Source: Mobula hypostoma (Eukaryota). Taken from it: 64,000 nt of DNA. The notes beneath the pieces are model-generated. The model did no database searches. It was not told where the DNA came from and worked only from the letters and a program-made list of their open reading frames with translations. The stretch spans positions 13,082,001-13,146,000 of the forward strand of contig NC_086110.1 in assembly GCF_963921235.1 (NCBI RefSeq). The letters run 5' to 3'. Below are positions 6,681 to 47,400 of this stretch, piece after piece; the stretch's first letter is position 1, and each line of letters begins with the position of its first letter. A program made the position numbers and the translations under genes.

Positions 6681-6788
6681 TTTATTTCCTGGAATGATCG
6701 GGGAATGTTCAATGGAGATAATGACTGGGCAGGAGAGACAGGTGGAACTGCTTATTCCTAATCTTATTCTTAAATTTCTTACTTTTAT
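6681..6788 (-). promoter_or_regulatory. Candidate polyadenylation signals for the receptor gene
   Basis: Minus-strand AATAAA (plus-strand tttatt) at 6783-6788 and 6681-6686, about 180 and 280 nt past the stop codon. Confidence 0.4.
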
Positions 6789-6967
6789 TCTTACCAGTCA
6801 TAATCGCTTCCAACAAATCGAAGATGAAATTGATCCCTTATCTTCCTAATTTATACATGTGATAGATTAACAATCTTTGTCTGGAGGCAAGAAATGCAAC
6901 GAATAAATGCCTCGGGTCTCCACTCATTGATAGTCTATAGCTCTAAACTGCAGTTGGATTCTCAGCT

Positions 6968-7099
6968 TCACAGTTTCTTTGATGTATTTACGTCTGCGTA
7001 CAATGCATGTTTGTTTTGATGTTTGGGTGCTGGCGTGTTCTTGGAATCGGGAAGCTGCAGAGCAGCGTAAGTCAGTTTGTCAGCTCCATTTCCTGCAGT
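6968..7099 (-). CDS. Exon 7, terminal exon with ITIM LTYAAL and distal ALYADV tyrosine motif
   Basis: Acceptor tattttcgcag|ACT, phase 0; TAGNGADKLTYAALQLPDSKNTPAPKHQNKHALYADVNTSKKL*. LTYAAL fits the ITIM consensus (I/V/L/S)xYxx(L/V). Confidence 0.88.
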   Translation of the reverse strand, partial: TAGNGADKLTYAALQLPDSKNTPAPKHQNKHALYADVNTSKKL

Positions 7100-10000
7100 C
7101 TGCGAAAATATTTGAAGATCAGGGGTTAATTGAGAATCCATTGAGTTGAACAAATTTAATCAAGAATTGTAATATAAATTAGTGATGCACACATAAGTTA
7201 TCAATTTTAGATTTCTGCCGTTTTACACAAAGTTTATGTCAACATTGTTTCAAAATTTCCCTTTTTGATTTATTTGGTATTTCAACTCCAAGAGCCTGTG
7301 CTGTCGCACTGAACAATGAGCGTTTCTTTCCTTACTGAAAATGAACTTCAACAACATCGAGATCGGAGAGCAGATAACTCCTTGAAGAGCAGGTATAGTA
7401 CAAAATATTTCGCTAACTCAATATACAACAGCATTGTTGTGTTATGTTTGTCTGATTGCCGCAAACTGTTTAGTCCACAGATCGTACGGTGTTTCCTCAG
7501 TCACACCTGCCAACAGAACTCCAAATATACACAGACACTGTCATCAGTGGATACCGCACAACTGATAGATTGAACGCTGGCACTTTGTTCATTCATGCCA
7601 CATAGTTACTGTTTTGTCACAGTTCGGCATTTCCATGAATAATAACAATGTTCGGTTGGTTCAGTGTTTCTCGGTTATTATCAGATATTCGAGTTCATTG
7701 TGGAGCTGATAATGAGCATTGGAAAGTATGGCTATTCCTAGCTTCATGCTTTTTAGTGTTTCCACATTACATATGAAATTAAATTCATAAAAGCGAGGGT
7801 AAAAAAGATAATCTCAATGGATTCTGCAGATGCTGGAAATCTTGAGGAATGCAAAAGAAATGCTGATGTAATTCATTCGGTAAGGCAACATGTATGAAGG
7901 TAAATAAACTGCTGACGTTTCTGTCCGAAACGCTTTAGCAGGACACCAAAAGAAGGGGGTCGGAAGCTAGAAAAGGAAGGTGGGGAATGAATACAAGATG
8001 ACAGGTGATATGAGAAACCAGGTGGGAAAGAACTTGTGTTGATGATGGGGATGGAATGACTTAGAAGCTGGGAGGTGATGAGTGGAAAAGGAAAACGGTG
8101 CAAGAAGGAATCTGATAGAAGGAGACAGTGGACCCCGGAGGAAATGGAAGAAGGAAGGGTACCAGTGGAGGTGAAGGGCAGATGAGGAGAAGAGAAGAGG
8201 TGAAAGGGAGCCATAGTTGGGAATGGAGAAAAAAATAGAAAGGGAATGATGAAATAAGCATTAAAAATTAGAGAGATCAATGTTCATGCTTTCAGGTTGG
8301 AGTCCACCCAGATGGAAGAAAAATGTGATGATATTTCGAGTGTGTTTAGTCGTAAATGGTACAGTGACAAAGGTCAGATCAGGTCCGTAAAATTTATCTC
8401 CTTTGGAATATCGTTTATATATATGTTGGAATCGATTGTTAGGAATGAGATTACGGAGTACCTGGAGGTACATGACAAGTTAGGCCAAAGGCTGCATGGT
8501 TTTCTGAAAGGAAAATCCTGCCTGTGTAACCTACCGCATTTTTTTGAGGAAATTGCAAGCAGGGTAGACAAAGGAGATTGAGTAGATGTGGTGCACTTGG
8601 ATTTTCAGAAGGCCTTTGTCAAGGTGCTGCACATGAAGCTGCTTAGCAAGATAAGAGCCTATGGAATTACAGAGGCGTTACTAACATGAGTGAACATTGC
8701 TGATTGGAAGAAAACAGAGAGTGGAATAAAGGGATCCTATTTTGGCTGACTACCGGTTACCAGCGGAGTTGCACAGGGGTTGGTGTTGCGACCGCTCCTT
8801 TTTATGATGTATATCAATGATTTTGACTATGGGATTAATGGATTTTGGCTAAATTTGCCGATGAAACAAAGATAGGTGGAGGGGTGGATAGTGCTGAGGA
8901 AACAGAGCTGCAGAGAGACTGAGATAGTTTAGGGGAAAGGGCAAAGAAGTGGCAAATAAAATACAATGTTGGAAAGTGTATGGTCATGCACATCGGTGGA
9001 AGAAATAAACGTGCAGACGATTATTTAGATGGGAAAATAATTCAAAATGCCGAGGTGCAAAGGGAATTGCGAGTCCTTATGCAGGATATCTGAAAGGTTA
9101 ACCTCCATGTTAAGTCGGTTGTGAAGAAGGCGAATGTAATGTTGGAATTCATTTCTCGAGGTATAGAATATAAGAACAGGGTGTGATGTTGAGGCTCTAT
9201 AAGGTACTCGTGAGACCACACTTGGAGTATTGTTTGCAGTTTTGGGCTCCTTATTTTGGAAGGGATATGCTGACATCGGAGAGGGTTTAGAGAAGATTCA
9301 TGAGAATGATTCAAGGAACGAAAGGGTTACCGTATGAGGAACACCTGGCAGCTCTTGGGATGTATTCCTTGGAGTTCAGGAGAATTGGGGGCGGGGGTGG
9401 GGATCACATAGAAACATTCCGAATATTAAAAGGCTTGAACAGATTAGATGTGGAAAATTTATTTCCATGCTAGGGGAGTCTAGGACAAGAGGGCACGACT
9501 TCAGGATTGAAGGACGTCCATTTGGAAAGAGATGCGGAGAAATTACTTTACTCAGAGGGTAGTAAATATGTGGAATTTGTTGCAATGGGCGACTGTGGAG
9601 GCCAAGTCATTAGGTGCATTTAAGGCAGGGATAGAGGGATAGATACATTTTTGATTAGTCAGGGCATCAAAGGGTATGGGGAGAAGGCAGCGGAGTGGGG
9701 ATGACTGGAAGAATTGGATCAGCCCATGATTGAATGACGGAGCAGACACGATGTGCCGAATGGCCTACTTCTGCTCCTATATTTTATGGTATTGTATATC
9801 TGTTGTGCGTGGTTCGGTAGAGTAGCGGCTAGGTTAACACTATTACAGCAGCGGTGATCCAGGTTTAATTCCCGTAACCGACGAAATGGTGTGTTTATAT
9901 GTTTTCCCATGACCGTATGACTTTTTCTGGGCGCTCAGGTTACCTCCCACGTTCCAAAAACGTACTGGTGAGTCGGCTAATTAGTCACATGGCTGTAATT

Positions 10001-13000
10001 GGGTTGCACGAACTAGTTGGGTCGTATGGCTCTGTTACAGTGGCGTGCAAATTTTGGGCACCCCGGTCAAATTTTCTGTTACTGTGAATAGTTAAGTGAG
10101 TAGAAGTGGAACTGATTTCCAAAAGTCATAAAGTTAAAGATGAAACATTCTTTTCAACATTTTAAGCAAAATTAGTGCATTTTTGGTCCAATTTTAGAGT
10201 GAAAGAAATGGAAAGGTGCACCATGCAAATGTTTACGGACCCCAAGAGATTTGAGCTCTCAGGTAACTTTTACCAAGGTCTCAGACCTGAATTAGCATGT
10301 TAGGGCTATGGCTTCTTCACAGTTATCGTTAGGAAAGACCAGGTGATGCAAATTTTAAAGCTTTATTAATATCCTGATTGCTGAAACCTTGTCCCAACAA
10401 TCAGAAGACATGAGCTCCTCTAAGCGGCTGCCTAGCACTCTGAAAATTAAAATAAATGATGCGCACAAAGCAGGAGAAAGCCAGCAAAGCGTTTTCCGGT
10501 AGCCGTTTCCTCAGTTCGTAATGTAATTAAGAAATGGCAGTTAACAGGAACGGTGGAGGTCAAGTTGAGGTCTGGAAGACCAAGAAAACTTTCCTAGAGA
10601 ACTGCTCGTCGGATTGCAAGAAAGGCAAATCAAAACCCCCGTTTGACTGTAAAAGACCTTCAGGAAGAATTAGCAGACTCTGGAGTGGTGGTGCACTGTT
10701 CTACCGTGCAGCGACACCTGCACAAATATGACCTTCATGGAAGAGTCATCGGAAGAAAACCTTTCCTGCATCCTCATCACAAAATTCAGCGTCAGAAGTT
10801 TGCAGAGGAACATCTAAACAAGCCTGATGCATTTTGCAAACAGGTCCTGTGGACTAATGAAGTTAAAATAGAACTTTTTGGCCGCAATGAACAAAAGTAT
10901 GTTTGGAGAAGAAAGTGTGCAGAATTTCATGAAATAAAAACACCTCTCCAACTGTTAAGCACGGGGGTGGATCGATCATTATGCTTTGGGCTTGTGTTGC
11001 AGCCAGTGGCACGAGGAGCAGTTCACTGTTAGAGGGAAGAATGAATTCAATTAAATACCAGCAAATTCTGGAAGCAAACATCACACCGTCTGTAAAAAAA
11101 CTGAAGGTGAAAAGAGGATGGATAATGATCCTAAACACACCTCAAAATCCACAATGGACTACCTTAAGAGGCGCAAGCTGAAGGTTTTGCCATGGCCCAC
11201 ACAGTCCCCCGACCTGAATATCATCGAAAATATGTGGATAGACCGGAAAAGAGCAATGCATGCAAGACGGCCCAGAAATCTCACAGAACTAGAAGCCTTT
11301 TGCAAGGAAGAATGGGCGAAAATTCCTCAAACAAGAATTGAAAGGCTCTTAGCTGGCTACAGAAAGCATTTACTAGCTGTGATACTTGCCAAAGGGGGTG
11401 TTACTATGTACTGACCATGCAGGATGCCCAAAATTTTGCTTCAGGCCCTGTTCCTTTTTTTGTTAATTTGAAATTGTAAAAGAAGGAAATAAAAAAAGTA
11501 ATCCTGCTTAAAATATTAAAGAAATGTGTGGACCTTTAACTTTATGCCTTTTGGAAATCAGGTCATCATTTACTCGATCACAGTAACAGACATTTTGTAC
11601 AGTAGTGCCCAAACACGTGCATGCCACTGTATATCTTCAAAGCAAATTCATATATTATTCATGGCAATCTCTCTGCTTTACCTGAGAATAGATAATGCAT
11701 TCTTCTTGTTGTCGATCTTTGCGAAATCCTTTATTCTCCCTTATATTTAGTGAAACATGGGGAGTGGTGTGATCAACCGCAGCTTGGTCAGCCTGTTGGA
11801 AAAACACACTTAATACTGATAACTGGTACAAGGTCAGTGATCATGAACTATTTGGTTTGGAATATCTAATAATAGAAAAGGATTTTATAAATGTTTGGAA
11901 TAATATTTTGTCCGCGTATTATGATATTGTCCGTATATCATACCGGAGGTGGGATGCCAAACCCATTTCAGGCTGGAAGTCACTAGGTTTACTTTAGATT
12001 TCCAAACAGCCACTTAAAACCATCCTTTCAATCGGATCGGTTTCTCAGGTCTGGCCATCATTTTTGTTTTCATCTCTTCTGTCATATCCCTTACGCGCTT
12101 CTAAGTTTTGTGGACGGGCTTTATCCGATGCGTTTCTCTTAGCACCCATTCAAATTACTATAATTATTGGCATGACGCGATTTCGTCCCCACGGTGCATT
12201 TAGAGGCTGTGACTCTTGAAACTCGCATTATCTAGGTTAAGGATATTGGAACAAGTGACAAGACCTGTTGTACGGTTCCAGCCTGGCTTAACTGAGGTAG
12301 CGAATACGGGAGGGGCATCTTGCCAGCTGTTGAGCTGATTGTTGTTGCTGGTGTATCAATTAAATTTCAATCGAAATAAGTAGAGCTGTTGGACATGCCC
12401 GTTACAGTAAATGGTTAAAATAGCATTCGTTCTGGCTGAAATAATGGCAGAGCATTCCAGAGCAATAAAGCGACGGTAAAAAAAATCTTAAACGTTATAG
12501 CTTCAGCTTATATATTACTCCCAGAAGCGGTTCTACATTTCGGGAAGTGCTACAAATGCTGATAGAAGTTTCAACGGAGTTCTACTATAATGAAGCCAGT
12601 GGGATATGACAACCTTGCTTTGGTGATGCGAAAAGTTGTTGCAGCAAATATCGTTAGGTAAAAGTAAATATATGCGCTACAATTGGGAAGGTAATTAATG
12701 AACACAAAAAAGTTGTTTCCCGTGTAGACAGATGGGTATATAACCGATAAAGGTTTAATATATGCTATCAGGAGGATCCAGGTGGGACACATTTATTAAC
12801 ATTGAACTGCTGGAACTTTGAAGTGAAACAGACAAATAAGACACACAGTAGATCAGGAAACACGAGAGGAAAGAGAAATAATCAACGGTTACGTTGCTTT
12901 CCGGGGAGAGGTGTTCAATCTGAAACGACAACATTTTCTCTTTCCCAAAATGTCGTTGGAGATTTTTAATTTCTGGATTAAATCCAAAATGGGAGATGAC

Positions 13001-16000
13001 AATACATTTAAATGTAGCAGGCATTTCTTTCAAAATTGAGGATGATAATCCTTCAGCGTAGCCTCGTGGAGTAGAAGGCGCCTGGTGGAATTTCCTTAAC
13101 ATGTGGGTATCATTGTGCACCAGATACTACACGTTTTATTGGAAGCATATTCGATTCCATTGCAGGTCATGCACTGTTCTGTGGATCTTTGTTGGGAATC
13201 GGTGTTAAAAACTCCATATGACTTTCCAAAGCAAGATTTCGTTGCATTTTCAATTTTGCTTGCTGTGCGTTCAGATCAGATGTAACATATATTGCGAAAT
13301 GCGTGTACTGTATTTTTCCATTGTGCACGACACAGCGATTCTCGTAAGCCGACATTTGACATCTAAAACATCTCAGTCTTAAACTTGTATTTAATTATTC
13401 GTCAAACGAAGCGTGATTAACAGCATAACTTCCATTAGTATACACTACCGTTCATCTTAATGCAACCGGTTATGAACTGATGTAGAATCCTGAAAGACGA
13501 TAGATTCAGATTCAATAGGAATATTCAAATCTATCTTGGATAAAACTGCAAAATAAAGAGTTGTCAGGTAGTTTTATTGTTCTCTACTGCGTTTCAAATG
13601 TTAGAACCAAGTAAATCTTCGGCGGGAGGACAAGATGGCGGCATGCAGTGCGTGCGCAGCTCTCTGGTGAAAAATGATATCGTATCTGTCAAATAGGGGC
13701 CATGGACAATTCTGATTTGATGGAGAATGGACGTGAAAGCACAGAGGAACATTCGCTGCTGTCGTTACTGTGTGGTCGTGAATCTTTCGGAGGGTAGGCC
13801 TCAAAATCCCCGACCTTGCCTGCTTTTGGCGACCGAGAAGGTGGTCGAAACGTTCGGGCAGATGTGGCGCTCAGTACTTGGTATCGTAGAGCTGATCAGA
13901 GCTCGAAGGTTTCGGATGACTCAGAGTCGGATTGTGGTCGGCATGGCAGGGAGAGTTTTTCTTCGTTCTCCCGTCTACGTGACATGTGGGACATTTGAGA
14001 AACCTTGAACTTTACTGTGCTCACGGACTTCATCAAGTTATGGTATTGTTGCACTGTTTGTAACTATATGCTATAATTATGTGGTTTTCTCAGTTTTTTC
14101 AGTCTTGGTTTGTCCTGTGTTTTGTAATATCACACCGGAGGAAATAATGTATCATTTCTTAATGCATGCATTACTAAATGACAATAAAAGAGGACTACTT
14201 GTCTTCATAATCATAAATTTGTCATATTTAAGGTACGTTTGATGTTAGGCCGGTAATTTTGACATCGGGAGTGGGTAAGTTATTAGAGGGAGTACTAAGA
14301 GACAGAATCTACAAGCATTTGGATAGACGGGGGCATATTTGGGAGAGTCAACATGGCTTTGTGCGTGGTAGGTCATGTTTGACCAATCTATTGGAGTTTT
14401 TCGAGGAGTTTACCAGGAAAGTGGATGAAGCGAAGGCAGTGGATGTTGTCTAAAGCCTCTGACAGGGTCCCGCATGGGAGGTTAGTTCGGAAAATTCAGT
14501 CGCTAAGTATACATGGAGAGGTGGTAAATTGGATTAGATATTGGCTCAATGGCAGAAGCCAAAGAGCAGTAGTAGAAAATTGCTTCTCAGAGTGGAGACC
14601 TGTGACTCGTGGTGCGCCACAGGGATCAGTGCTGGGTCCATTGTTATTTGTCATCTGTATCAATTATCTGGATGATAATGTGGTAAATTGGATTAGCAAA
14701 TTTACTGATTATACAAAGATTTGAGATGTACTAGACAGTGAGGAAGGTTTTCGGAGCCTGCAGAGGGACTTGGACCAGCCGGAAAAATGGGCTGAAAAAT
14801 GGCAGATAGAGTTTAATACAGACAAGTGTGAGGTATTGCACTTTGGAAGGACAAACCAAGGTAGAACATACAGGGTTAATGGTAAGGCACTGAGGCGTGC
14901 AGTAGAACAGAGGGATCTTGGAATACAGATACAAAATTCCCTAAAAGTGGCGTCACAGGTAGATAGGGTCGTAAAGAGAGCTTTTGGTACATTGGCCTTT
15001 ATTAATCAAAGTATTGAGTATAAGAGCTGGAATGCTATGATGAGGTTGTATAAGGCACTGGTAAGGCTGAATTTGGAGTATTGTGTTCAGTTTTGGTTAC
15101 CAAATTACAGGAAGGATATTAATAAGGTTGAAAGAGTGCAGAAAAGGTTTACAAGGATGTTGCCGGGACTTGAGAAACTGAGTTACAGACAAAGGTTGAA
15201 TAGATTAGGACTTTATTACCGAGAGCGTAGAAGAATGAGGGGAGATTTGATAGAGGTATATAAAATTATGATGGGTATAGATAGAGTGAATGCAAGCAGG
15301 CTTTTCCCACTGAGGCTAGGGGAGAAAAAAAAAACAGAGGACATGTGTCAAGGTTGAAGGGGGAAAAGTTTAAAGGGGGGCTTCTTCACACAGAGAGTGG
15401 TGGGAGTGTGGAATGAGCTGCCAGACGAGGTAGTAAATGCGGGTTATTTTTGAACATTTAAGAATAAATTGGACAGATACATGGGTGGGAGGTGTATGGA
15501 GGGATGTTGTCCGTGCGCAGGTCAGTGGGACTAGGCAGAAAATAATTCGGCAGAGCCAAGAAGGGCCAAAGGCCTGTTTCTGTGCTGTAGTTTTTCTATG
15601 GTTTCTGAGGTTTTCTATATCTCTGCTATACCTATATGCCGATCTCAAAGAAGTCAAGCCACTTCACTTACCAGCTCTTCACTCTGACATCTGTCCAAAG
15701 AACTTGTGTTAATCCCTTAAGAAAAATAAAAGAAATTATTTACATTGTAAAAGTTGGACATTATTCGTTTGATACAAATAGAATTCATCGCGTAAGAGGA
15801 ACTGCTGAAGGTATGGATCTTTCAGAAAACGTTTTGTGGTATTAGTTGTCTTAATACAGTGCATCAACATCATGGCACTATGCTCAAGAGTCTACGACAT
15901 TTAAAGAAGTCGTAAAGTGATAATAGTATATGAGTGGCTGTACTACATCTAAATACTGTCGTTAAAATGAAAATTAAAATCAATGAGACATGCATGAGCT

Positions 16001-19000
16001 CGTCAATGTTCTTTAAACAGTGACAGTAAACATAGACCTACGCCAAACTTCTTACGCTTCAAAGTATAGACCTGCCATTGTACCCAAAACGACATTTGAA
16101 GTACTTCAAAGGATATAACGGCATTTATGAACAAGATACAGCATATATATACAGCGAGTGGATTGGTGGAATTATTGTATATTAAGATCCAGCTTGTGTT
16201 GTGCCTGATGATTCTCAATGTAATCAGGTTCGACCATGTCAATCCCTGTCTAATCATGCTGTAATGACATTTATTCTTTTTGACGTGAAGTATCTTTCAC
16301 ACATCTATTTTGCACGAATAGAGGTGATATTTCTCAGCGATCAGGTTTCTTACCGTGCAATCTCTTTAACTTGACATTCACCAAAACAATTATTAGAGCT
16401 AAAATTGCCGATCCGCCCAGTGCACATGCCAGAATGAATTTAGTATCAGCGCCTTGTGGATCAACAGGGGGAAAACAAGAAACTGTGAAGCACTTATACA
16501 TCTAAAAAAATGCACTCATGAGAATCAATAATGCAAAATATCTCATGGGCTCCTTTCAAATCTCACTGCACAATATCGGAAAATATGTCATAAGACAGGA
16601 AATGCAAATGCCCACCTTTGTTATATTTCGATGAGATATAGAGTTTACGTTTTGCTTTCCACAATTTTGGCAAATGTTCAGATACTTACAAATACTGCAC
16701 AAATTGAATTTCTTAATTCGTCCTACACGATTTAAACTAACGGAATAACACAAGTTTTTGAACACCTTTCACGTTCAATACTCACTATCAATTACTAAGC
16801 TTTAAAGTTAGTCAGTCTTCCGTGTTTGGGTAGCTGTTCAGTTACTGTTCTTAACAAGGTCACATTGACCCCACCACAATGACTTGTAAGCGCTTTCATC
16901 TTACATTGAGCACAAAAGATTCTGAACATGCTGAAATTCAGAATAACACATAAAATCCTGGAAGAACTCAGCCGATCAGGCAGATCTAATATGTCGACGT
17001 TTACCGCCGAGATCCAACATCATGACTTCATCAAAACACCATCTTACCTTGGATGTAGCTGAAACTGGCAGACAACGTGAGGGAGCCATGCGACACCAGG
17101 CAGGTGTAAATATCTTTTCCCCAAGTAGACTGCGTAATTTCCAATAAACTAAGTACCTCATACAAGCCGTCCACGTTCCGGTTTGTCACATTTTCTATTC
17201 CAGTGTGAATTTGCTTGTTATTTCTTTGCCAAATGATTTCTAATTTCTCCGGGTAGAAGGCAGCCGTTTTACAAAGGAGCTTTCGAGGAGACGAAAACCC
17301 TCCAACAGGAACAATTTCCACTGGAGTTGGAGGAGCTTGAATCAAAAGATAGTTATATTGAGTATTTTCGATCCATTTCAGTACAGATAATTTCACTTAT
17401 CTCCCCTCCAACTAGCATGACGCTCAACTATCAAATCAGTTACCCGCCAGTATTAACCAGTATTTAATAAATTCTTCCAATTTCACGTTCTGCTTATTGT
17501 TGCTCAACCATACACACACACACTCCGATGCAAAATACGCCATGACGCCTCACCATTGCTTTATAAAGTCTGAATATTACATCCTTACTTTTATATTCTG
17601 GTCCTCTTGAAATGAATGCGATCATCGGATTTGCCTTCCTGGCCACAGACCCAACCTGCAAATTAACCTGTATGGAATACTGCACACGGACTCCCAAGTC
17701 CCTTTGCACCTGAATGTTATTTTTTTTGTGTTTTCTCTCCAGTTGGAAAATATTCAAAACTTTCACACCCTCCACCAAACTGCATGCCCGCACACCTCTC
17801 GATACTGTATTCCATCTGCCATTTCTTTGCCTGTCCTCCTAATCTGTCTCAGTCTTTCTGTAGTCTCTCTATTTCCTAAAACTACCTGCCCGTCCACCTC
17901 TCTTCAAATCGTCTGCAAGCTTTGCAACAAAGCCATCAATTCCACCATCCATATCATTGACTAATCACATTAAACGAATCAGTCACTGCACAGACCCCTG
18001 TGGAACACAGTTCGCACGGGAAGCCAACCAGAAAATGCTCCCTTTATTTCCATTCTTTGTCACTTACCAACCAGCCACTGCTTTATCCACCCTAGTATCT
18101 TTCTTGTTATACTTTGGGCTCGTAGCTTGTTTAACAGCCTTGTGTGTGGTACCTTGTCAAAGGCTTTCTGTAAATCCAAGTACACAGCAATCGATTCTGC
18201 TTATCTTTATCTATCCTGCTTTTTATTCCTTCAAATAATTCAATCAGATTTGTCTGGCGAGAGTTTCCTTTGAGGATATCATGCTGACAATGGCGTGTTT
18301 TGTTATGTGTCTCCAAGTAATCTAATACCTGATCCTTAATGATGGATTCCAACATCTTGACAACCAGTGAGGTCAGACTGACTGGTCTATAGTTTCCCTT
18401 TTCTGCCTCTCTGCTTTCTTGAAGAGTGGAGTGACATTTGTAATTTTCCAGTCTTCCAGAACCATTCCAGAATCGTAATTCTTGAAAGACCTTTACTAAT
18501 GCCTCCACAATCTATCAGCAACTTTTATCAGAATCATGGTATGTACATCATCTGGTCTAGGTGAATTACCTACTTTCAGAACTTTCAGTTTCCCAAGAAC
18601 TTGCACTCCAATTATGTCTCTAGTTTTGCTGTTGTTCAAGATAGACTCTCGGAATAAACCGGAATAATATAGACTAGTTGGTATTACAGTGAAGTGGGTA
18701 ATTTATTGGAAGATATTCGAAAGAATAGGATAGATAAATATTGAGATAGACTGGGCTTGTTTGGGAATAAGCAACATTATTTTGTGCAATGTAGGCTCTG
18801 TCTAACCAATCTTAATGAACTTTTCGAGCGGGTTACCATGGACCTTGATGAAGGATAACAGTGTATATGGTCAATATGGATTTTAGCAAGAGCTTTGGAA
18901 AAGTTCTGCATGGGGGTGGTGGGCTGATCAAGTACGTTCGCTTGGAATTCAGGATGAAGGAGTAAGTTGTGTCTAACTTTGGCTTCGCGGGAGAAGCCAG

Positions 19001-21085
19001 TGTATGGTAGTAGATGTTTGTTCTTTGAACGAAGGCCTTTTACTGGTGGTGTGCCGCATGGCGATCAAAGCTTGCAGCGGGTTATGGACCAGGTCTAAAA
19101 ATGCGTTGAAAATGGCAGATAGGATTTAATGAAGGTAATTGTAAGCTGTTGTACTTTGAGAAGACAAACCATTCTCCGATACACATCGTCAACGAGACTG
19201 GGATTGACGAATGCGGTAAAAAATGATCTTGGAATACAGATAGATAATTCATTGGAAATGGAGAAAAAGGCAGTGCTTTCGTAAAGATAACCTTTGTCAT
19301 ATTGGACTTCACATATCAGAGTATTGAGTGTAAAAGTTGGAATGTTATGCTGAAGTTGCATTAGACGGCAGTGAGAACAAATCTGGTGTATTGTTCACAG
19401 TTCTGGTTAATTATCTGCTGGAAAGTTATAAATATGATTGAATGAGTACAAAACAACTTACAAGATGTGGCATGAATTTGAGGACATGGATTATGAGGAA
19501 AGGTTTAACAGGTAAGGATTTTTTGAATGATTCGTAAGAGAAATAGCGAACATTTGATCGAAGTATACAAAATTATGAGGGTGTATACAAGCCTGCATCA
19601 TCCACTGAGGTTGGGTGAGAATGTAATTGGAATTCATAGGTTCAGAGTGAAATGAAAAGTATTAAAGGCGAACCTGGTGGGAAACGTCTTTACTCGGCCG
19701 GTGATGCTATTGTGGAGTGAGCTGCCAGAGGAGGTGTTTGCGATCGACTCTCTACCCGTTACAGTACTATCCAATCCTATCAAAATTCGCCTTAACCCTG
19801 AGAGGTCTATATTTCTCACAATTTATATGGTGAAAGAAGTATAGATTTTGCTAACCCTGCATAACAAAAGTTGGAATGACATTTTGCAGTGCATGTGATA
19901 GATGTTGGAATTAACTCATTTGGTGCTGGGTATTATTCCTGTCTACTTGTTGATGGGGAAATGGAGCATTGTGCTGCTGCATACAGACCCTTTGATCGAG
20001 ATTACTCTATTTAAGTATTAATATTCTGCGTCCTCTGTGCTGAGCAATCGAGTTATCCAACTCCAGCCATTCACATTAATATTAATATTATTTCAGCCTC
20101 TTGCTTGCAACACAATCCTAACCTTGCTGGAAAAGTAAAGTAATTCGTTGTATTCAAAGTACCTTCGTGATAATGAGGGTGAAGTCCTAAGGTATCACTA
20201 ACCTTGGAAATTCGGTTTATTTGGGAGATAGCTGATGAGCAGCGCTCGACGAACAGCGGTGGGAAAGAGCCGAGGAAGTACGATATGATAAACAGAATCA
20301 ACTCCGTTATCCGCCTAATAGTTGCTACATGAAATGTGATTAAGTCTTCAGTTCTTTATAATTCTGAATTGACAATCCCTGGACTGGGGTATATTTTAAC
20401 GCGGGGAACAAATGTATTCTCGCCGCTTGTTTAGTCAAGTAGAAACATTTATTTTCATCCTCATCACTAAGTTTGATGTAAAATGCACAGAGCCGAAAAT
20501 CTCCAAACAACCACACTTACCGAACACAGTGAGGCTGGTGCCACAGCTACTCACGAAAAATTGCTCCTGAAACTTTACTTCACAGTAATATAGTCCAGAG
20601 TCGCTGAATTTGACATTTCGGAGTACAAGCGTTCCTCTTCCCCTTTCTACTGTAAATTGTCTTCTGCTGTCCCCTTCTAAAAATGCCTTCTCGCCTTGCC
20701 TCCGCCAACGAATGTCAACAGTATCTTGTGATAGTGGAAATTTGCAGAACATCGTGACATTCGCACCACCCGGGACGTTCAGGTCCCGAGGGAATTGAGA
20801 TACTTCGTTCGCCGTTACTTTGACGACTGCCGGAAAAGTAAGCAAGTGTATTAATAACAGTTAAACACAGTGAATTAATAAAAAACGGATGACGTAAGTC
20901 ACTGGATATCTAAGAGCGAAAGACGGCCGAATAGATGAAAAAATATAACCGAGTATGCTGCAGGCACCCAGAGTTAAATATTATTAAATAGAATATTCAA
21001 TTCGGAAACGGCGTTTATAAATCAGCATACTTAGCCAAGTAATAGCCAGAAGTGTCATGTACGAAACCGTAAACTTCTCCGCCAT
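6968..21085 (-). CDS. Spliced gene for a non-rearranging V(J)-C1-TM-ITIM Ig-superfamily inhibitory receptor (SIRP-like tail, CD79a-like V); 7 coding exons, 344 aa
   Basis: Exons 21031-21085, 20521-20826, 17048-17335, 16354-16452, 15672-15715, 11682-11792 and 6968-7099, all with GT-AG boundaries. Intron phases 1,1,1,1,0,0 chain into one open frame: MAEKFTVSYMTLLAITWLIVKVTA-NEVSQ...YYC...SCGTSLTVF-APPTP...FYP...YTCLVSH...-TM-...LTYAAL...LYADVNTSKKL*. Confidence 0.88.
7817..8340 (-). mobile_element. Penelope-like element 3' tail / pseudo-LTR fragment
   Basis: HLGGLQPESMNIDLSNF (end of the GIY-YIG region) and terminal sequence shared with 34748-35290 and 44052-44230. Confidence 0.6.
8410..9780 (+). 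mobile_element. CR1 LINE, RT 3' half plus tail (degenerate)
   Basis: HGFLKGKSCLCNL, DFQKAF, KFADETKIGG and RPHLEYCLQFW-like motifs; tail ggcctacttctgctcctat. Confidence 0.85.
9805..10035 (+). mobile_element. tRNA-derived V-SINE-like element
   Basis: A/B-box-like head followed by V-domain-like core ttcccatgaccg...ttttctgggcgctcaggttacctcccacgttccaaaaacgtac. Confidence 0.55.
10038..11629 (+). mobile_element. Tc1-family DNA transposon with IR/DR termini, inactive
   Basis: TA TSD at 10036-37 and 11630-31. About 210-bp imperfect TIRs starting CAGTGGC, with an inner repeated gcaaaa.ttttgggca motif. Frameshifted transposase: GRPRK-like HTH region, VLWTNEVK (first catalytic D is N), DNDPKH, SPDLNIIE. 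Confidence 0.93.
11682..11792 (-). CDS. Exon 6, cytoplasmic exon (ADQAAVDHTTPHVSLNIRENKGFRKDRQQEECIIYSQ)
   Basis: Acceptor tgtgtttttccaacag|, donor CAG|gtaaag, 111 nt, phase 0-0, open frame with a Tyr motif at its 3' end. Confidence 0.75.
13621..14200 (+). repeat. Unclassified ~600-bp dispersed repeat, copy 1
   Basis: Starts caagatggcggc and ends ...taaatgacaataaaagag; clearly homologous to 49257-49910. Confidence 0.7.
14255..15605 (+). mobile_element. CR1 LINE 3' part (RT plus tail), intronic and antisense to the receptor gene
   Basis: SQHGFVRGRSCLTNLLEFFEE, PQGSVLGPLLF, KFTDYTKI, RLNLEYCVQFW; tail ctgtgctgtagtttttctatgg. Confidence 0.9.
15672..15715 (-). CDS. Exon 5, juxtamembrane cytoplasmic exon (GINTSSLDRCQSEEL)
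   Basis: Acceptor tttcttttatttttcttaag|, donor CTG|gtaagt, 44 nt, phase 1 to 0, which matches both flanking exons. Confidence 0.82.
16354..16452 (-). CDS. Exon 4, transmembrane exon (GADTKFILACALGGSAILALIIVLVNVKLKRLH)
   Basis: Polypyrimidine acceptor ttcttgttttccccctgttgatccacaag|, donor CACG|gtaaga, 99 nt, phase 1-1. About 22 uncharged hydrophobic residues followed by basic KLKR. Not in the ORF track; found by reading the minus strand. Confidence 0.9.
17048..17335 (-). CDS. Exon 3, C1-set Ig constant domain
   Basis: Acceptor ttttgattcaag|, donor CAAG|gtaaga, 288 nt, phase 1-1. C1 hallmarks LLCKTAAFYP, IIW, NVDGLYEVLSLL, W..DIYTCLVSHGSL. Confidence 0.95.
17570..18540 (-). mobile_element. 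CR1 LINE RT fragments in the V-C1 intron
   Basis: GNYRPVSLTSLVVKMLESIIKD, QRDLGVRVQYSIQVNLQV. Confidence 0.8.
18690..19760 (+). mobile_element. Highly degenerate CR1 RT fragment
   Basis: Remnant motifs ctaaccaatcttaatgaacttttcgag, atggattttagcaagagctttg and ctgtggagtgagctgccagaggagg. Confidence 0.6.
20521..20826 (-). CDS. Exon 2, short V-type Ig domain with J-like G strand
   Basis: Acceptor ttttccggcag|, donor G|gtaagt, 306 nt, phase 1-1. B-strand Cys (TMFC), C-strand Trp (IRWRR), DSGLYYC motif, C-terminal SCGTSLTV, N-glycan sequon NVT. Confidence 0.95.
21031..21085 (-). CDS. Exon 1, leader peptide MAEKFTVSYMTLLAITWL
   Basis: ATG at 21085 in aagATGG context; 55 nt ending phase 1 at A|gtatgc. 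Joined to the V exon it gives hydrophobic TLLAITWLIVKVTA with a plausible cleavage site after VTA. Confidence 0.8.
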
Positions 21086-35290: not shown

Positions 35291-38200
35291 GAAAATAGGT
35301 GCAGGAGTAGGCCATTTGGCCCTTCGAGCCTGCACCGCCATTTATTAAGACCATGGCTGATCATCCAACTCAGAACCCTGCACCAGCCTTCGCTCCATAC
35401 CCCCTGATCCTCGTAGCCACAAGGGCCATATCTAACTCCCTCTTAAATATAGCCAATGAACTGGCCTAAACTGTTTCCTGTGGCAGAGAATTCCACAGAT
35501 TCACCACTCTCTATGTGAAGAAGTTTTTCCTAATCTCGGTCCTAAAAGGCTTCCCCTTTATCCTCAAACTGTGAACCCTCGTTCTGGACTTTCCCAACAT
35601 CGGTAACAATCTTCCTGCATCTAGCCTGTCCAATCCCTTTAGGATTTTATACGTTTCAATCAGATCTCCCCTCAGTCTTCTAAATTCCAACAAGTACAAG
35701 CCCAGTTCATCCAGTGTTTCTTCATATGAAAGTCCTGCCATCCCAGGAATCAATCTGGTGAACCTTCTTTGTACTCCCTCTATGGCAAGGATGTCGTTCG
35801 TCAGACTAGGGGACCAAAACTGCACACAATACTCCAGGTGTGGTCTCACCAAGGCCTTGTTCAACTGCAGTAGCACCTCCCTACTCCTCTACTCGAATCC
35901 TCTCGCTATAAATGCCAGCATACCATTCGCCCCTTTCACCGCCTGCTCTACCTGCATGCCCACTTTCAATGACTGGTGTATAATGACACCCAGGTCTCGT
36001 TGCACCTCCCCTTTTCCTAATCAGCCACCATTCAGATAATAATCTGTTTTCCTATTTTTGACACCAACGTGGATAACTTCATATTTATCCACATTAAATT
36101 CCATCTGCCATGAATTTGCCCACTCACCCAACCTATCCAAAGTCACCCTGCATCCTCTTAGCATCCCCCTCACAGCTAACACTGCCACCCAGCTTCGTGT
36201 CATCCGCAAACTTGGAGATGCTGCATTTAATTCCCTCATCCAAGTCATTAATATATATTGTAAACAACTGGAGTCCCAGAACTGAGCCTTGTGGTACCCC
36301 ACTAGTCACTGCCTGCCATTCTGAAAAGGTCCCGTTTATTCCCACTCTTTGCTTCCTGTCTGCTAACCAATTCTCTATCTACATCAATACCTTACCCCCA
36401 ATACCGTGTGCTTTAAGTTTGCACACTAATCTCCTGTGTGGGACCTTGTCGAAAGCCTTTTGAAAATCCAAATATACCACATCCACTGGTTCTCCCCTAT
36501 CCACTCTACTAGTTACAGCCTCAAAAAATTCTATGAGATTCGTCAGACATGATTTTCCTTTCACAAATCCATGCTGACTTTGTCCGATGATTTCACTGCT
36601 TTCCAAATGTGCTGTTATCACATCTTTGATAACTGACTCCAGCAGTTTCCCCACCACCGACGTTGGGCTAACCGGTCTATAATTCCCCGGTTTCTCTCTC
36701 CCTCATTTTTAAAAAAGTGGGGTTACATTAGCCACCCTCCAATCCTCAGGAACTAGTCCAGAATCTAACGAGTTTTGAAAAATTATCACTAATGCATCCA
36801 CTATTTCTCGGGGCTACTTCCTTAAGAACTCTGGGATGCAGACCATCTGGCCCTGGGGATTTATCTGCCTTTAATCCCTTCAATTTACCCAGCACCACTT
36901 CCAAATTAACATGTATTTCGCTCAGTTCCTCCATCTCACTGGACCCTCTGTCCCCTACTATTTCTGGAAGATTATTTATGTCCTCCTTAGTGAAGACAGA
37001 ACCAAAGTAATTATTCAATTGTTCTGCCATGTCCTTGCTCTCCATAATCAATTCACCTGTTTCTGTCAGTAGGGGAACTATATTTGCCTTTACCAGTCTT
37101 TACCTTTTTACATATCTATAAAAGCTTTTACAGTCAGTTTTTATGTTCCCTGCCAGTTTTCTCTCTTAATCTTTTTTCCCCTTCCTAATTAAGCCCTTTG
37201 CCCTCCTCTGCTGAACTCTGAATTTCTCACAGTCCTCAGTTGAGCCACTTTCTCTGGCTAATTTGTATGCTTCTTCTTTGGAATTGATACTATCCCTAAT
37301 TTCTCTTGTCAGCCACGGGTGCACTACCTTCCTTGATTTATTCTTTTGCCAAACTGGGATGAACAATTGTTGTAGTTCATCCATGCAATCCTTAAAAGCT
37401 TGCCATTGCATATCCACCGTCAAGCCTTTAAGTGTCATTTGCCAACCTATCTTAGCTAATTCACGTCTCATATCTTCAAAGTTACCGCTCTTTAAGTTCA
37501 GAACCTTTGTTTCTGAATTAACTATGTCACTCTCCATATTAATGAAGAATTCCACCATATTATGGTCACTCTTACCCAAGGGGCGTCTCACGACAAGATT
37601 GCTAATTAACCCTTCCTCATTGCTCAATACCCAGTCTAGAATAGCCTGCTCTCTCGTTGGTTCCTCGACATGTTGGTTCAAAAAACCATCCCGCATACAT
37701 TCCAAGAAACCCTCTTCCTCAGCACCTTTACCAATTTGGTTCACCCAATCTACATGTAGATTGAAGTCACCCATTATAACTGCTGTTCCTTTATTGCACA
37801 CATTTCTAATTTCCTGTTTAATACCATCTCCGACCTCACTACTACTGTTAGGTGGCCTGTACACAACTCCCACCAGCGTTTTCTGCCCATTAGTGTTACG
37901 CAGCTCTACCCATATCGATTCCACATCTTCCCGGCTTATGTCCTTCCTTTCTATTGCGTTAATCTCATCTTTAACCAGCAACGCCACCCCACCTCCCTTT
38001 CTTTCATGTCTATCCCTCCTGAATATTGAATATCCCTGAACGTTGAGCTCCCATCCTTGGTCACCCTGGAACCATGTCTCTGTGATCCCAACTATATCAT
38101 AATCATTAATAACAATCTGCAATTACAATTCATCCACCTTGTTACAAATGCTCCTTGCATTGACACACAAAGCCTTCAGGCGCTCTTTTACAACTCTCTT

Positions 38201-40995: not shown

Positions 40996-43900
40996 AGTTT
41001 AATAGAGCTGTTAGGGAGGGTTTAAACTAATTTGGCAGGGGGATGGGAACCGGAATGACAGAGCGGAGGAAAGGGAAAACAGAAATAAATTTAAGATAGT
41101 GAGCAGTAAAGATGTCAGGAAAGACAGGCAGGTGATGGGGCAAATATGTAGCCATTGGGATGAGTTGCAGGGTAATAAAGTTGCAGTAAAATCAAAGCGA
41201 AAAGTATCAAATACTGGTGTTAAGGTGTTGTACTTAAAGGCACGCAGCATAAGGAATAAGGTGGATGATTCTGTCGTACAGCTACAGATTGGCAAGTATG
41301 ATATTGTGGCCATCACTGAGACCTGGCTGTCGGAAGGATAGGAAGGTAGGCAGAGTGGAGACGTGGCTTTATTGGTAGGAAATGATATTAAATCATTAGA
41401 AAGAGGTGATATAGGATCGGAAGGTGCAGAATCTTTATGGGTTGAACTAAGAAATAGCAAGGGTGAACGGACCCTGATGGCAGTTATTTATAGGCCCCCA
41501 AACAGCTGCAGGGATATGGACTACAAATTACAACAGGAAATAGAAAAGGCTTGTCAGAAGGGCAGTGTTATGATAATTGTGGGGGATTTTAACATGCGAG
41601 TGGACTGGGAAAATTTGGTCGGCACTGGATCTCAAGAGAGAGAGAATTTGTAGAATGTCTGCGAGATAGCTTTTTAGAACAGCTTGTTGTTGAGCCTACT
41701 AGGGGATCGGCTGTACTGGATTGGGTATTGTGTAATGAACGGGAGGTGATTAGAGAGATTCAGGTGAAGGAATCCTCAGGAGGCAGTAATCATAACATGA
41801 TTGAGTTCACTGTGAAATTTGAAAAAGAGAAGCCGAAATCGGATGTGTCGGTATTTCAGTGGAATAAAGGAAATTACAGTGGCGTGTGAGAGGAGCTGGC
41901 CAAAGTTGAGTGTAAACGGATACTGGCGGGAAAGACAGCAGAGCAGCAGTGGCTGGAGTTTATGCGAGAAATGAGGAAGGTGCAAGACAGGTATTTTCCA
42001 AAAAAGACGAAACTTTCGAGTGGAAAAAGGATGCAACCGTGGTTGACAAGAGAAATCAAAGCCAAAGTTAAAGCAAAGGAGACGGCATGCAAGGAAGCAA
42101 AAATTAGTGGGAAGACAGAGGATTGGGAAGTTTTTAAAACCTTACAAAAGGAAAACAAGAAGGTGATTAAAAGGGAAAAGATTAACTATGAAAGGAAGCT
42201 AGCAAAATAATATCAAAGAGGATACTAAAAGCTTTTTCGAGTATATAAAAAGTAAAAGACAGGTGAGAGTAGATATAGGACCGATAGAAAATGATGCTGG
42301 AGAAATTGTAATGGGATAAGGAGATGGCAGAGGAACTGAACGAGTATTTTGCATCAGTCTTCACTGAGGAAGACATCAGCAGTATACCCGACACTCAAGG
42401 GTGGCAGGGAAGAAAAGTGTGCGCAGTCACAATTACGACAGAGAAAGTACTCAGGAAGCTGAATAGTCTAAAGGTAGACAAATCTACTGGACCAGGTGGA
42501 ATGCACCCGCGTGTTCTGTAGGAAGTAGCTGTGGAGATTGTGGAGGCATTAGCGATGATCTTTCAAAAGTCAATAGATTCTGGCATGATTCCGGAGGACT
42601 GTAAGATTGCAAACGTCACTCTGCTATTTAAGAAGGGGGCAAGGCAGCAAAAATGAAATGATAGACCTGTTAGCTTGACATCGGTGGTTGGGAAGTTGTT
42701 GGAGTCAATTGTCAAGGATGAGGTTACAGAGTAGCTGGAGGCATATGACAAGATAGGCAGAACTCAGCATGGATTCCTTAAAGGAAAATCCTGCCTCACA
42801 AACCTATTACCATTGTTTGAGGAAATTACCAGTAGGCTCGACAAGGGCGATGTAGTGAATGTTGTATATTTGGATTTTCAGAAGGCCTTTGACAAGGTGC
42901 TACACATGAGGCTACTTAACAAGATAAGAGCCCATGGAATTACGGGAAAGTTACATACGTGGATAGAGCTTTGGCTGATTGGCAGGAAACAGAGAGTGGG
43001 AATAAAGGGATCCTATTTTGGTTGGCTGCCGGTTACAAGTGGTGTTCCACAGGGGTCCATGTTGGGGCCGCTTTTTTTTACATTGTATATCAACGATTTG
43101 GATAATGGAATAGATGGATTTGTGGCTAAGTTTGCTGACGATACGAAGATAGGTGGAGGGGCCGGTAGTGCTGAGGAAACGGAGAGTCTGCAGAGAGACT
43201 TGGATAGATTGGAAGAACAGGCAGAGAAGTGGCAAATGAAGTGTAATGTTGGGAAGTGTATGGTTGTGCACATTGGCAGAAAATATAAACGGGCAGACTA
43301 TTATTTAAATGGGGAAAGAACTCAGTGTTCTGAGATGCAACGGGACTTGGAAGTCCTCGTACAGGATACCATTAAAGTTAACCTCCAGTTCGAGCCAGTA
43401 GTGAAGAAGGCGATTGCAATATTGGCATTCATTTCTTGAGGAATAGAGGATAGGGGCAGGGATGTGATGCTGCGGCTCTATAAGACGCTGGTGAGACCTC
43501 ACTTGGAGTACTGTGGGCAGTTTTGGGTTCCTTATTTAAGAAAGGATGTGCTGACGTTGGAGAGGGTACAGAGAAGATTCACTGGAATGATTCCGGAAAT
43601 GAGAGGATTAACATATGAGGAACGTTTGTCCGCTTTTGGACTGTATTCCTTGGAGTTTAGAAGAATGAGGGGAGACCTCATAGAAGCATTTCGAATGTTG
43701 GAAGGAATGGACAGAGTGGAAGTGGCAAAGTTCTTTCCCATGATGGGGTATTCTAGTACGAAAGGGCATGACTTAAGGATTGAAGGGCGCCCATTCAGAA
43801 CAGAAATGTGAAGAAATTTTTTTAGTCAGAGGGTGGTGAATCTATGGAATTTGTTGCCACGGGCAGCGGTGGAGGCCAAGTCATTGGGTGTATTTAAGGC

Positions 43901-44427: not shown

Positions 44428-47400
44428 CATAGAAACATAGAAACATAGAAAATATGTGCAGGAGTAGACCATTCGGCCCCTCGAGCCTGCACCGCTATTC
44501 ATACGATCATGGCTGATCATCCAACTCAGAACCCTGTGCCAGCCTTCCCCCCATTGCCCCTGATCCCTTTAGCCACAAGGGCCATATCGAACTCCCTCTT
44601 AAATATAGCCAATGAACTAGCCTGAACTGTTTCCTGTGGCAAAGAATTCCACAGATTCACCACTCTCTGTGTGAAGAAGTGTTTCCTAATCTCGGTCCTA
44701 AAAGGCTTCCCCTTTATCCTCAAACTGTGACCCCTCGTTCTGGACCTCCCCAACATCGGGAACAATCTTCCTGCATCTAGACTATCCAATCCCTTTAGGA
44801 TTTTATATGTTTCAATAAGATCCCCCCTCAATCTTCTAAATCCCAACAAGTATAAGCCTAGTCGATCCAGTCTTTCCAGGTAAGTCATTAATATATATTG
44901 TAAACAACTGGGGTCCCAGCACTGAGCCTTGCGGTACCCCACTAGTGACTGCCTGCCATTCTGAAAAGGTCCTGTTTATTCCCACACTTTGCTTCCTCTC
45001 TGCCAACCAATTCTCTATCCACATCAATACCATACCCCCAAAACCCTGTGCTTTAAGTTTGCACACTAATCTCCTGTATGGGACCTTGTCAAAAGCCATT
45101 GGAAAATCCAAATATACCACATCCACTGGTTCTCCCCTATCCACTCTACTAGTTATATCCTCAAAATATTCTATGAGATTCGACAGACATGATTTTCCTT
45201 TCACAAATCCATGCTGACTTTGTCCGATGATTTCACCGCTTTCCAAATTTGCTGTTATCACATCTTTGATAACTGACTCTAGCATTTTCCCCACCACCGA
45301 CGTTAGGCTAACCGGCCTATAATTGCCTGGTTTATCTCTCCCTCCTTTTTTAAAAAGCGGAGTTACATTAGCCACCCTCCAATCCTCAGAAACTAATCCA
45401 GAATCTAAAGAGTTTTGAAAAATCATAACTAATGCATCCACTATTTCTTGGGCTACTTCCTTGGGCCACTCTGGGATGCAGACCATCTGGCCCTAGAGAT
45501 TTATCTGCCTTTAATCCCTTCAATTTACCAAACACCACTTCGCTACTAACATGTATTTCCCTCAGTTCCTCCATCTCACAAGACCCTCTGTCCCCTACTA
45601 TTTCCGGAAGATTATTTATGTTCTCCTTAGTGAAGACATAACCAAAGCAGTTATTCAATTGGTCTGCCATGTCCCTGCTCCCCATAATCAATTCACCTGT
45701 GTCTGTCTGTAGGGGACCTACATTTGTCTTAACCAATCTTTTTCTTTTCACATATCTATAAAAGCTTTTACAGTCAGTTTTTATGCTCCCTGCCAGTTTT
45801 CTCTCGTAATCTTTTTTTCCCCTTCGTAATTAAGCCCTTTGTCCTCCTCTACTGGACTCTGAATTTCTCCCAGTCCTCAGGTGAGTCACTTTCTCTGGTT
45901 AATTTGTATGCTTCTTCTTTGGAATTGATACTATCCCTAATTTCCCTTGTCAGCCACGGGTGTACTACCTTCCTTGATTTATTCTTTTGCCAAACTGGGA
46001 TGAACAATTGTTGTAGTTCATCCATGCGATCTTTAAATTCTTGCCATTGCAAATCCACCGTCAACGCTTTAAGTGTCATTTGCCAGTCTATCTTAGCTAA
46101 TTCACGTCTCATATCTTCAAATTTACCCTTCTTTAAGTTCAGAACCTTTGTTTCTGAATTAACTATGTCACTCTGCATCTTAATGAATAGTTCCTCCATA
46201 TTATGGTCACTGTTAACCAAGGGGCCTCTCACGACAAGATTGCTAATTAACCCTTCCTCATTGCTCAATACCCAGTCTAGAACAGCCTGCTCTCTAGTTG
46301 GTTCCTCGACATGTTGGTTCAAAAATTGTCCCGCATACATTCCAAGAAATCTTCTTCCTCAGCACCCTTACCAATTTGGTTCACCCAATCTATATGTAGA
46401 TTGAAGTCACCCATTATAACTGCTGTTCCTTTATTGCACACATTTCTAATTTCCTGTTTAATACCATCCCCAACCTCACTACTACTGTTAGGTCGCCTGT
46501 GACCTTAAAGCACACGGTATTGGGGGTAAGGTATTGGTGTGGGTGGAGAATTGGTTAACAGACAGGAAGCAAAGAGTGGGAATAAACGGGACCTTTTCAG
46601 AATGGCAGGCGGTGACTAGTGGGGTACCGCAAGGCTCAGTGCTGGGACCCCAGTTGTTTACAATATATATTAATGACTTGGATGAGGGAATTAAATGCAG
46701 CATCTCCAAGTTTGCGGATGACACGAAGCTGGGTGGCAGTGTTAGCAGTGAGGAGGATGCTAAGAGGGTGCAGAGTGACTTGGATAGGTTGGGTGAGTGG
46801 GCAAATTCATGGCAGATGCAATTTAATGTGGATAAATGTGAAGTTATCCACTTTGGTGGCAAAAATAGGAAAACAGATTATTATCTGAATGGTGGCCGAT
46901 TAGGAAAAGGGGAGGTGCAACGAGACCTGGGTATCATTATACACCAGTCATTGAAAGTGGGCATGCAGGTACAGCAGGTGGTGAAAAAGGCGAATGATAT
47001 GCTGGCATTTATAGCGAGAGGATTCGAGTACAGGAGCAGGGACGTACTACTGCAGTTGTACAAGGCCTTGGTGAGACCACACCTGGAGTATTGTGTGCAT
47101 TTGTGATCCCCTAATCTGAGGAAAGACAACTTTGCCATAGAGGGAGTACAAAGAAGGTTCACCAGATTGATTCCTGGGATGGCGGGACTTTCATATGAAG
47201 AAAGACTGGATGAACTGGGCTTGTACTCGTTGGAATTTAGAAGATTGAGGGGGGATCTGATTGAAACGTATAAGATCCTAAAGGGATTGGACAGGCTAGA
47301 TTCAGGAAGATTGTTCCCGATGTCGGGGAAGTCCAGAACGAGGGGTCACAGTTTCAGGATAGAGGGGAAGCCTTTTAGGACGGAGATTAGGAAAAATTTC

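Follow-up and report, generated by a model that had tools for sequence, protein, structure and literature searches.

The window analysed here, a 64-kb stretch (64,000 nucleotides) of the genome of a cartilaginous fish, the lesser devil ray Mobula hypostoma (assembly GCA_963921235.1, contig NC_086110.1, positions 13,082,001 to 13,146,000), harbours a real and intact gene encoding a cell-surface immune receptor. A variable (V) immunoglobulin (Ig) domain with a J-like strand is followed in this receptor by one C1-set domain, a transmembrane (TM) segment and a long cytoplasmic tail with an inhibitory motif of the immunoreceptor tyrosine-based kind (ITIM). We consider it probable that this is an intact, transcribed and non-rearranging type I receptor gene, and that it belongs, as an inhibitory form, to a still unnamed multigene family of cartilaginous fishes in which ITIM-bearing forms are paired with forms that carry an arginine in the membrane (Arg-TM forms).

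The receptor gene consists of seven exons on the minus strand, running from position 21085 down to 6968 of the window, and every junction has a canonical AG acceptor and GT donor. Translation starts in exon 1 (21031..21085), with the ATG at position 21085; this exon encodes the bulk of the signal peptide (MAEKFTVSYMTLLAITWL) and ends in phase 1 at the donor gtatgc. The end of the leader and the V-set domain are encoded by exon 2 (20521..20826), including the J-like G strand FFVSSCGTSLTVF with an extra cysteine, Cys113, and the sole C1-set domain by exon 3 (17048..17335), with the landmarks CKTAAFYPE, a tryptophan, GLYEVLSLL and YTCLVSH. Exon 4 (16354..16452) supplies a short stalk and an uncharged transmembrane helix, GADTKFILACALGGSAILALIIVLVNVKLKRLH. 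The remaining three exons are cytoplasmic: exon 5 (15672..15715) encodes GINTSSLDRCQSEEL, exon 6 (11682..11792) encodes ADQAAVDHTT...ECIIYSQ and holds Y299, and exon 7 (6968..7099) encodes TAGNGADKLTYAALQLPDSKNTPAPKHQNKHALYADVNTSKKL with the ITIM at Y312, the motif at Y335 and the stop codon, the 3′ untranslated region extending below 6968. The exon phases chain as 1,1,1,1,0,0; the Ig and TM exons are in phase 1, as is usual in genes of the Ig superfamily, and the leader is split, its last residues lying in the V exon. The spliced coding sequence of 1035 nt translates without a stop into 344 residues, so that the seven chained GT-AG exons and the uninterrupted protein proposed in an earlier, sequence-only reading of this DNA are confirmed.

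This translation is identical, letter for letter, to RefSeq XP_062923615.1 of M. hypostoma (P0151 in our comparison), and the gene as annotated in RefSeq, 14,118 bp long, corresponds exactly to window positions 21085-6968. The gene was thus already predicted in RefSeq, under the automatic and misleading name "NCR3 ligand 1-like". An alternative in-frame acceptor for exon 4 at 16482 would add 10 residues and yield a protein of 354 residues, but this model was set aside since its pyrimidine tract is poorer and since 16452 agrees with RefSeq and with the models of Mobula birostris. Splice-site scoring recovered exon 5 and missed exon 6, and the correct exons came from orthologue models; the residues of exon 5 recur in the orthologue and paralogue models P0006, P0025 and P0230.

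Exon 2 matches the Pfam V-set profile (8e-13), and the V domain and J-like strand share this one exon, which ends in a GT donor. No heptamer-nonamer recombination signal sequence (RSS) was found by the V exon; heptamers occurred only within the codons of the J-like strand and in intron 1, neither with a nonamer. The gene therefore does not rearrange, because V domain and J-like strand are joined in a single exon that ends in a splice donor and the nonamer is absent. The germline-fused J-like strand that had been proposed thus stands, albeit with a degenerate J motif. The two heptamers are RSS-type CACTGTG sequences, one at 20531-20537 (minus strand) within exon 2, where it falls on the codons for Leu-Thr-Val in the J-like strand, and the other in intron 1 at approximately 20872; both are probably coincidental.

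The membrane-proximal exon 3 shows the classic C1 pattern C..FYP...W...GLYxxxSxL...YTCxVxH, and its best sequence matches in the PDB are UrIg2 (9dmx; first or second) and the constant domains of IgM, IgA and IgE. AlphaFold2, run on a 13-sequence alignment, predicted two Ig domains (pLDDT, the per-residue model confidence, 75-89), a TM helix at residues 220-248 and a disordered tail. A tblastn search of the window with the V and C1 exons revealed no further copy of either domain, in agreement with the single C1-set domain originally described. The class of this domain also bears on the RefSeq name, according to which the protein would be a B7-type molecule similar to B7-H6 (NCR3LG1), that is, a ligand for another receptor. 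The ectodomain of B7-H6 is of the V-C type and its tail bears tyrosine motifs, and the window protein resembles it in having V and C domains and a TM segment; in Foldseek, CD276, PD-L1 and NCR3LG1 are matched at ~1e-14 (B7-H6 itself at ~2e-14). Exon 3, however, scores 1e-13 against Pfam C1-set, as opposed to just 0.0094 against the CD80-like C2-set_2 and just 0.0033 against the BTN3-type C2-set_3, and identity with B7-H6 was rejected on these scores. Moreover, the V domains of the family carry the J motif GxGTxLxV, which is not known as a feature of B7 molecules, and the short-tailed Arg-TM partners described below are typical of receptors. Since members of the family go under about ten different names, the RefSeq name itself is weightless, and we regard a B7-type ligand as quite improbable.

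The J strand of the window protein, SSCGTSLTV, is degenerate in comparison with the family motif GxGTxLxV: the first glycine of the bulge is replaced by serine, and an unpaired cysteine, Cys113, is present where the other aligned family members have Ser, Thr or Gly. In addition, the WW motif of the family reads WR. All three peculiarities are also found in the paralogue P0230 and in the orthologues of M. birostris, and are lacking in the rest of the aligned family. Because they are common to P0230 and the M. birostris orthologues, these residues are real and several million years old.

From the resemblance of the V domain to CD79a and CD79b and from the cysteine in the G strand, one may speculate that the protein is a CD79-like signalling or dimerising subunit, present as a disulfide-linked dimer in a receptor complex. 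CD79a and CD79b have a VJ-type V domain, and among single-V entries of the PDB it is CD79b that this V domain (1.9e-5) and the family profile (5e-11) match best; mouse CD79b also gives the best alignment for the F-G region (E 0.001), which extends over the SCGTxLxV strand with its cysteine, and Cys113 has been retained in P0230 and the M. birostris orthologues. These scores are nevertheless weak (21-45 bits), and the cysteine is missing from the other aligned members, having been derived within Mobula. CD79 combines one Ig domain with an immunoreceptor tyrosine-based activation motif (ITAM, YxxL-x6-8-YxxL); here a C1 domain is added and the tail is of the ITIM type, its tyrosines 23 residues apart and not at ITAM spacing. 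CD79 homology was rejected as the principal explanation on account of the subclade-specific cysteine and the different architecture, and appears very unlikely. Judged from its distribution in the alignment, Cys113 is a residue derived in one Mobula subclade, possibly dimer-forming, and is not taken as a sign of CD79 ancestry.

The TM segment, FILACALGGSAILALIIVLVNV, is devoid of charged residues, and the cytoplasmic tail of 97 residues contains three tyrosines. Y299 lies in the context IIYSQT, Y312 in LTYAAL, which is a canonical ITIM, and Y335 in ALYADV, which resembles an ITIM or an immunoreceptor tyrosine-based switch motif (ITSM) and has Ala at −2. The uncharged TM segment postulated by the sequence-only reading is therefore real, whereas its ITIM tail holds in part, as only LTYAAL of the two tyrosine motifs is canonical and ALYADV is not. 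The spacing between Y312 and Y335 is 23 residues, which is also the tyrosine spacing with which PD-1, PECAM-1 and SIRP-alpha engage tandem-SH2 phosphatases. By their motifs, and by analogy with such receptors, inhibitory signalling would be expected. For ligand binding, phosphatase recruitment and cell type we infer a scheme in which the V domain would bind a cell-surface or pathogen ligand and Src-family kinases would phosphorylate Y312 and Y335. The 23-residue spacing would then fit the tandem SH2 domains of SHP-1 or SHP-2, which may damp activating signals in the same cell, and the Arg-TM relatives, with their near-identical ectodomains, may signal oppositely through an adaptor with an acidic TM segment.

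To define the family, HMMER was run exhaustively with the V exon, and three word-indexed searches were added. The V-exon search was dominated by giant multi-Ig proteins, and only single-stretch matches were informative. At least 77 protein clusters were obtained, scoring 163-501 bits against the first family profile, and every one is from Chondrichthyes (sharks, rays, skates and chimaera). With a second and wider profile the weakest family member scored 154 bits, and the next match, a sturgeon butyrophilin, 59 bits; P0151 itself reached 493 and 449 bits against the two profiles. The family occurs in Mobula, Hypanus, Hemitrygon, Pristis, Amblyraja and Leucoraja, and further genera represented include Heterodontus, Heptranchias, Scyliorhinus, Chiloscyllium, Hemiscyllium, Mustelus, Carcharodon, Cetorhinus, Pristiophorus and Callorhinchus. 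The cartilaginous-fish origin that had been deduced from the letters is thus correct, both for the window, which is from M. hypostoma, and for the family clusters. What does not hold is the impression of a lone curiosity, since the gene is one of many paralogues across the Chondrichthyes.

Members of the family are recognised by the signatures WW[RK]xGE and GxGTxLxV in the V domain, VPPTPL at the V-C1 border, CKTAxFYPE, GLYEVSS and YTCLVSH in the C1 domain and KLTYAxL in the tail. In the family consensus the J motif reads GNGTGSxLTV, equivalent to GxGTxLxV, and is accompanied by CKTAAFYPE and KLTYAAL. The names given to these proteins by NCBI, about ten in number, contradict one another (SIRP-alpha-like, SIRP-beta-1-like, NCR3LG1-like, TCR-beta-like, Ig-lambda-like, MHC class II-like, PD-L1-like, CD276 homolog and tapasin-related-like; TCR, T-cell receptor; MHC, major histocompatibility complex), and such automatic names carry no information. 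In each species many of the genes share a single chromosome: that of M. hypostoma, 80.6 Mb long, has at least 9, and one Heterodontus chromosome has at least 12. In four models from Chiloscyllium, Callorhinchus and Amblyraja (P0168, P0173, P0174 and P0187) C1 or V-C1 units are doubled (V-C1-C1 or V-C1-V-C1), either because domain number varies in the family or because the automatic annotation merged adjacent genes.

A full-text literature search found no paper describing this family, the publications on PRARP and on shark NCR3 being outside its reach. The family is thus apparently an undescribed and large group of VJ-C1 paired receptors of cartilaginous fishes. The earlier suggestion of a possibly undescribed family can accordingly be kept for the family as a whole, but not for the gene itself, which is a RefSeq entry with many paralogues.

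The pairing of receptor forms emerged from a tree and tail survey of 68 ectodomains. Long tails with ITIM or ITSM motifs are joined to 25 of these, and 11 are joined to short tails and carry Arg (or Lys) in the outer part of the TM segment, as in ILIFRSALGG, LIPRFVLGF and VWILRCAMG; the remainder are uncharged short forms or truncated models. Long-tailed ITIM forms and short-tailed basic forms are intermingled on the ectodomain tree. There the window gene is joined first by P0231, its orthologue in M. birostris (node value 95; this and the following two values are starred in our tree), and then by the same-genome paralogue P0230 (98), and the next node is a clade of seven rows (97) that includes the Arg-TM genes P0162, from the same genome, and P0158. 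These two have 79-80% of the V domain and 86-88% of the C1 domain in common with the window protein, together with the TM sequence ILIFRSALGG and an unrelated short tail. For P0162 the identities are 79% in V, 88% in C1, 45% in the TM segment and 24% in the tail. By analogy with SIRP, KIR and LILR, whose pattern this is, the family looks like one of paired inhibitory and activating receptors. A short-tailed paralogue on the same chromosome, P0041, has Glu instead of Arg in its predicted TM segment, ILILECAAGGSAIL, a charge that is uncommon in receptors coupled to an adaptor.

Between species the window copy is well conserved, with identities to the M. birostris orthologue of 99% in V, 97% in C1 and 93% in the tail. 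The M. hypostoma paralogue P0230 is 81% identical in V and 93-100% in the other parts. The comparison suggests that each V domain has been conserved between species and that the V domains of paralogues have diversified, protein identities alone being no proof of selection.

Evidence from RNA was obtained from Logan contigs of the runs X1 and X3, which differ from the window by 1-6%, and transcription and splicing are shown in close relatives. The joint between exons 6 and 7 (7099->11682; CT..AC on the plus strand, equal to GT..AG on the minus strand) is exact in both runs, and an X1 contig of 348 nt spans exon 7, exon 6 (11682-11793) and 95 more letters. RNA contigs span 6700-7099. Another X1 contig stops precisely at 20826, the acceptor of exon 2; in X3 one contig stops at 17334, the acceptor of exon 3, and one stops at 16353, the donor of exon 4, followed by 144 extra letters. 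All three continue into non-adjacent sequence. Of the predicted junctions, that between exons 6 and 7 is therefore crossed by transcripts of relatives, while the three other exon borders are seen as contig ends only.

These transcripts are also relevant to whether the gene could be a decaying or non-functional recent duplicate, with a frame that is open by chance. Such decay might be read from the degenerate J motif, the change of WW to WR, the non-canonical distal tyrosine motif and the near-identical paralogue on the same chromosome. It is hard to reconcile with seven exons that are all open and have canonical splice sites, with an M. birostris orthologue in which the unusual residues are retained and V identity reaches 99%, and with the spliced transcripts in relatives, and we hold it to be highly improbable.

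Several observations weigh against an intact, transcribed inhibitory receptor of a family peculiar to cartilaginous fishes, and must be noted. In this copy the J bulge has lost its first Gly, and the WW motif its second Trp. With Ala at −2, ALYADV falls outside the ITIM and ITSM consensus, whereas paralogues have the ITSM-type TLYADV, and the argument for an inhibitory function proceeds from motifs and analogy. The restriction of the family to Chondrichthyes was obtained with a word-prefiltered search, in which no member from bony fishes or amphibians was recovered. At 1-6% divergence the RNA contigs come from relatives or paralogues and are not demonstrably from the window copy, and part of X1 is pre-mRNA or DNA, given its low-depth coverage of introns. 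Finally, the main product could be a V-only splice form, which is only a lead. In X1 the C1 exon is nearly uncovered and the V and tail exons are covered, coverage holes by themselves being no proof, and RefSeq isoform X2 of the M. birostris orthologue (P0006) skips the C1 exon. Since exon 3 is in phase 1-1, its skipping keeps the frame and results in a V-only form.

No host gene besides the receptor gene was seen in the 64-kb window, which also contains mobile elements. Intron 6 of the receptor gene contains a remnant of a Tc1/mariner-type transposase (10643-11414, plus strand; HTH_Tnp_Tc3_2 5e-16, DDE_3 2e-10), broken into at least two frames, on which the contigs of the RNA runs stack very deeply, as expected of a repeat. 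A gag-pol stretch of an LTR (long terminal repeat) retrotransposon or retrovirus-like element lies at 60909-63953 on the minus strand in separate open reading frames (ORFs), comprising a zinc-knuckle gag ORF of 272 residues, an integrase zinc-binding domain and a reverse transcriptase (RVT_1, 5e-28). Many fragments of long interspersed nuclear elements, with ORFs for an apurinic-type endonuclease and RVT_1, are found on both strands, at 37166-38122 (−), 42813-43811 (+), 44526-46340 (−), 46534-47550 (+), 56223-56963 (+) and 59986-60537 (−). A run of 151 N at 58716-58866 is an assembly gap or a masked stretch.

Genes with a non-rearranging VJ unit and a true C1 domain are rare and provide material for reconstructing what the RAG transposon invaded, as exemplified by UrIg and UrIg2 (PMC12227049). 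Tentatively, the family may represent an ancient and undescribed germline-joined VJ-C1-TM lineage, with the exact layout of one TCR or light chain but the wiring of paired innate receptors, that arose before chimaeras diverged from sharks and rays, and a third non-rearranging VJ-C1 lineage beside UrIg and UrIg2, although we think this doubtful. If it were true, reconstructions of the pre-RAG antigen receptor could draw on the V and C1 domains of the family as informative outgroups and would gain an independent data point, and in sharks and rays the family would be a candidate equivalent of innate recognition systems of the SIRP, KIR and NITR type. Taken alone, the copy in the window contributes little to what the family shows; particular to it are the CD79-like unpaired cysteine, a V domain that is 99% conserved yet 19% off that of its paralogue, and the possible V-only form.

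Among known receptors, SIRP-alpha and SIRP-beta of mammals and birds share with the window gene and its relatives the plan of a type I membrane protein in which a C1-set domain comes after a V domain whose G strand is J-like, as well as an inhibitory form with SHP-spaced tyrosine motifs and short-tailed sister genes with a basic TM residue. In a Foldseek search of Swiss-Prot, SIRP-alpha of cow, human and rat were the top three matches (4.6e-17 to 6e-15, 16-17% identity). True homology, in which the family would descend from the ancestor of SIRP-alpha and SIRP-beta, have lost one C1 domain and possibly bind a CD47-like ligand, could account for this ranking, for the common logic of J-like V, C1, ITIM tail and paired Arg-TM partners, and for the many paralogues that NCBI names SIRP-alpha-like or SIRP-beta-1-like. 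Identity is only 16-17%, however, and CD276, PD-L1, TAPBPL, TCR-beta and butyrophilins lie within an approximately 100-fold range of E-value, NCR3LG1 also following closely. Bony-vertebrate SIRPs were missing from the scored candidates of the sequence search, in which the next match after the family had 59 bits, and no SIRP chain was among the top 60 PDB sequence matches for the V or the C1 profile. Nor is the V-C1-C1 layout of SIRP present, as the tblastn search of the window yields a single C1 exon and the RefSeq model has two Ig domains. SIRP furthermore has four SHP-binding tyrosines compared to two candidates here (plus Y299), and the chondrichthyan family is much larger and faster-changing. 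Descent from SIRP therefore seems unlikely to us. Of the earlier proposal that the receptor signals like SIRP-alpha, the two-tyrosine layout of SHP type and the top structural match in Swiss-Prot remain; by its architecture the gene is not a SIRP.

PRARP and NKp30 have been described as "VJ genes in the MHC", and UrIg as a novel non-rearranging (VJ-C1) gene (PMC10751288). Elasmobranchs possess UrIg and UrIg2 as VJ-C1 genes that do not rearrange; UrIg is a secreted protein with three C1 domains, the UrIg2 of the nurse shark comprises nine C domains, and they are single genes, linked to the MHC and located in the antigen-receptor complex, respectively (PMC12227049). Like these, the window gene belongs to a cartilaginous fish and has a single-exon VJ, a split leader, a true C1-set domain and no RSS. 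UrIg and UrIg2 differ in that they have between three and eleven C domains and lack an ITIM tail, where the window gene has one C1 domain, a TM segment and an ITIM tail and thus lacks their layout of a VJ exon with three or more C1 domains, and in that they are single genes as opposed to the many copies per genome of the chondrichthyan family. Similarity to the C1 domains of UrIg2 amounts to approximately 25 bits per domain, which is not above that to the domains of IgM, IgA and IgE.

Ig light chains and TCR chains offer the closest parallel in ectodomain design, having a V(J)-C1 ectodomain of two domains, phase-1 Ig exons and a split leader, and Fab light chains rank first in the Foldseek search of the PDB. 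The proposal that the ectodomain follows the plan of a TCR or Ig light chain is thereby upheld, with the difference that V and J are germline-fused here, the RSS is absent, and an uncharged TM segment leads into a long signalling tail.

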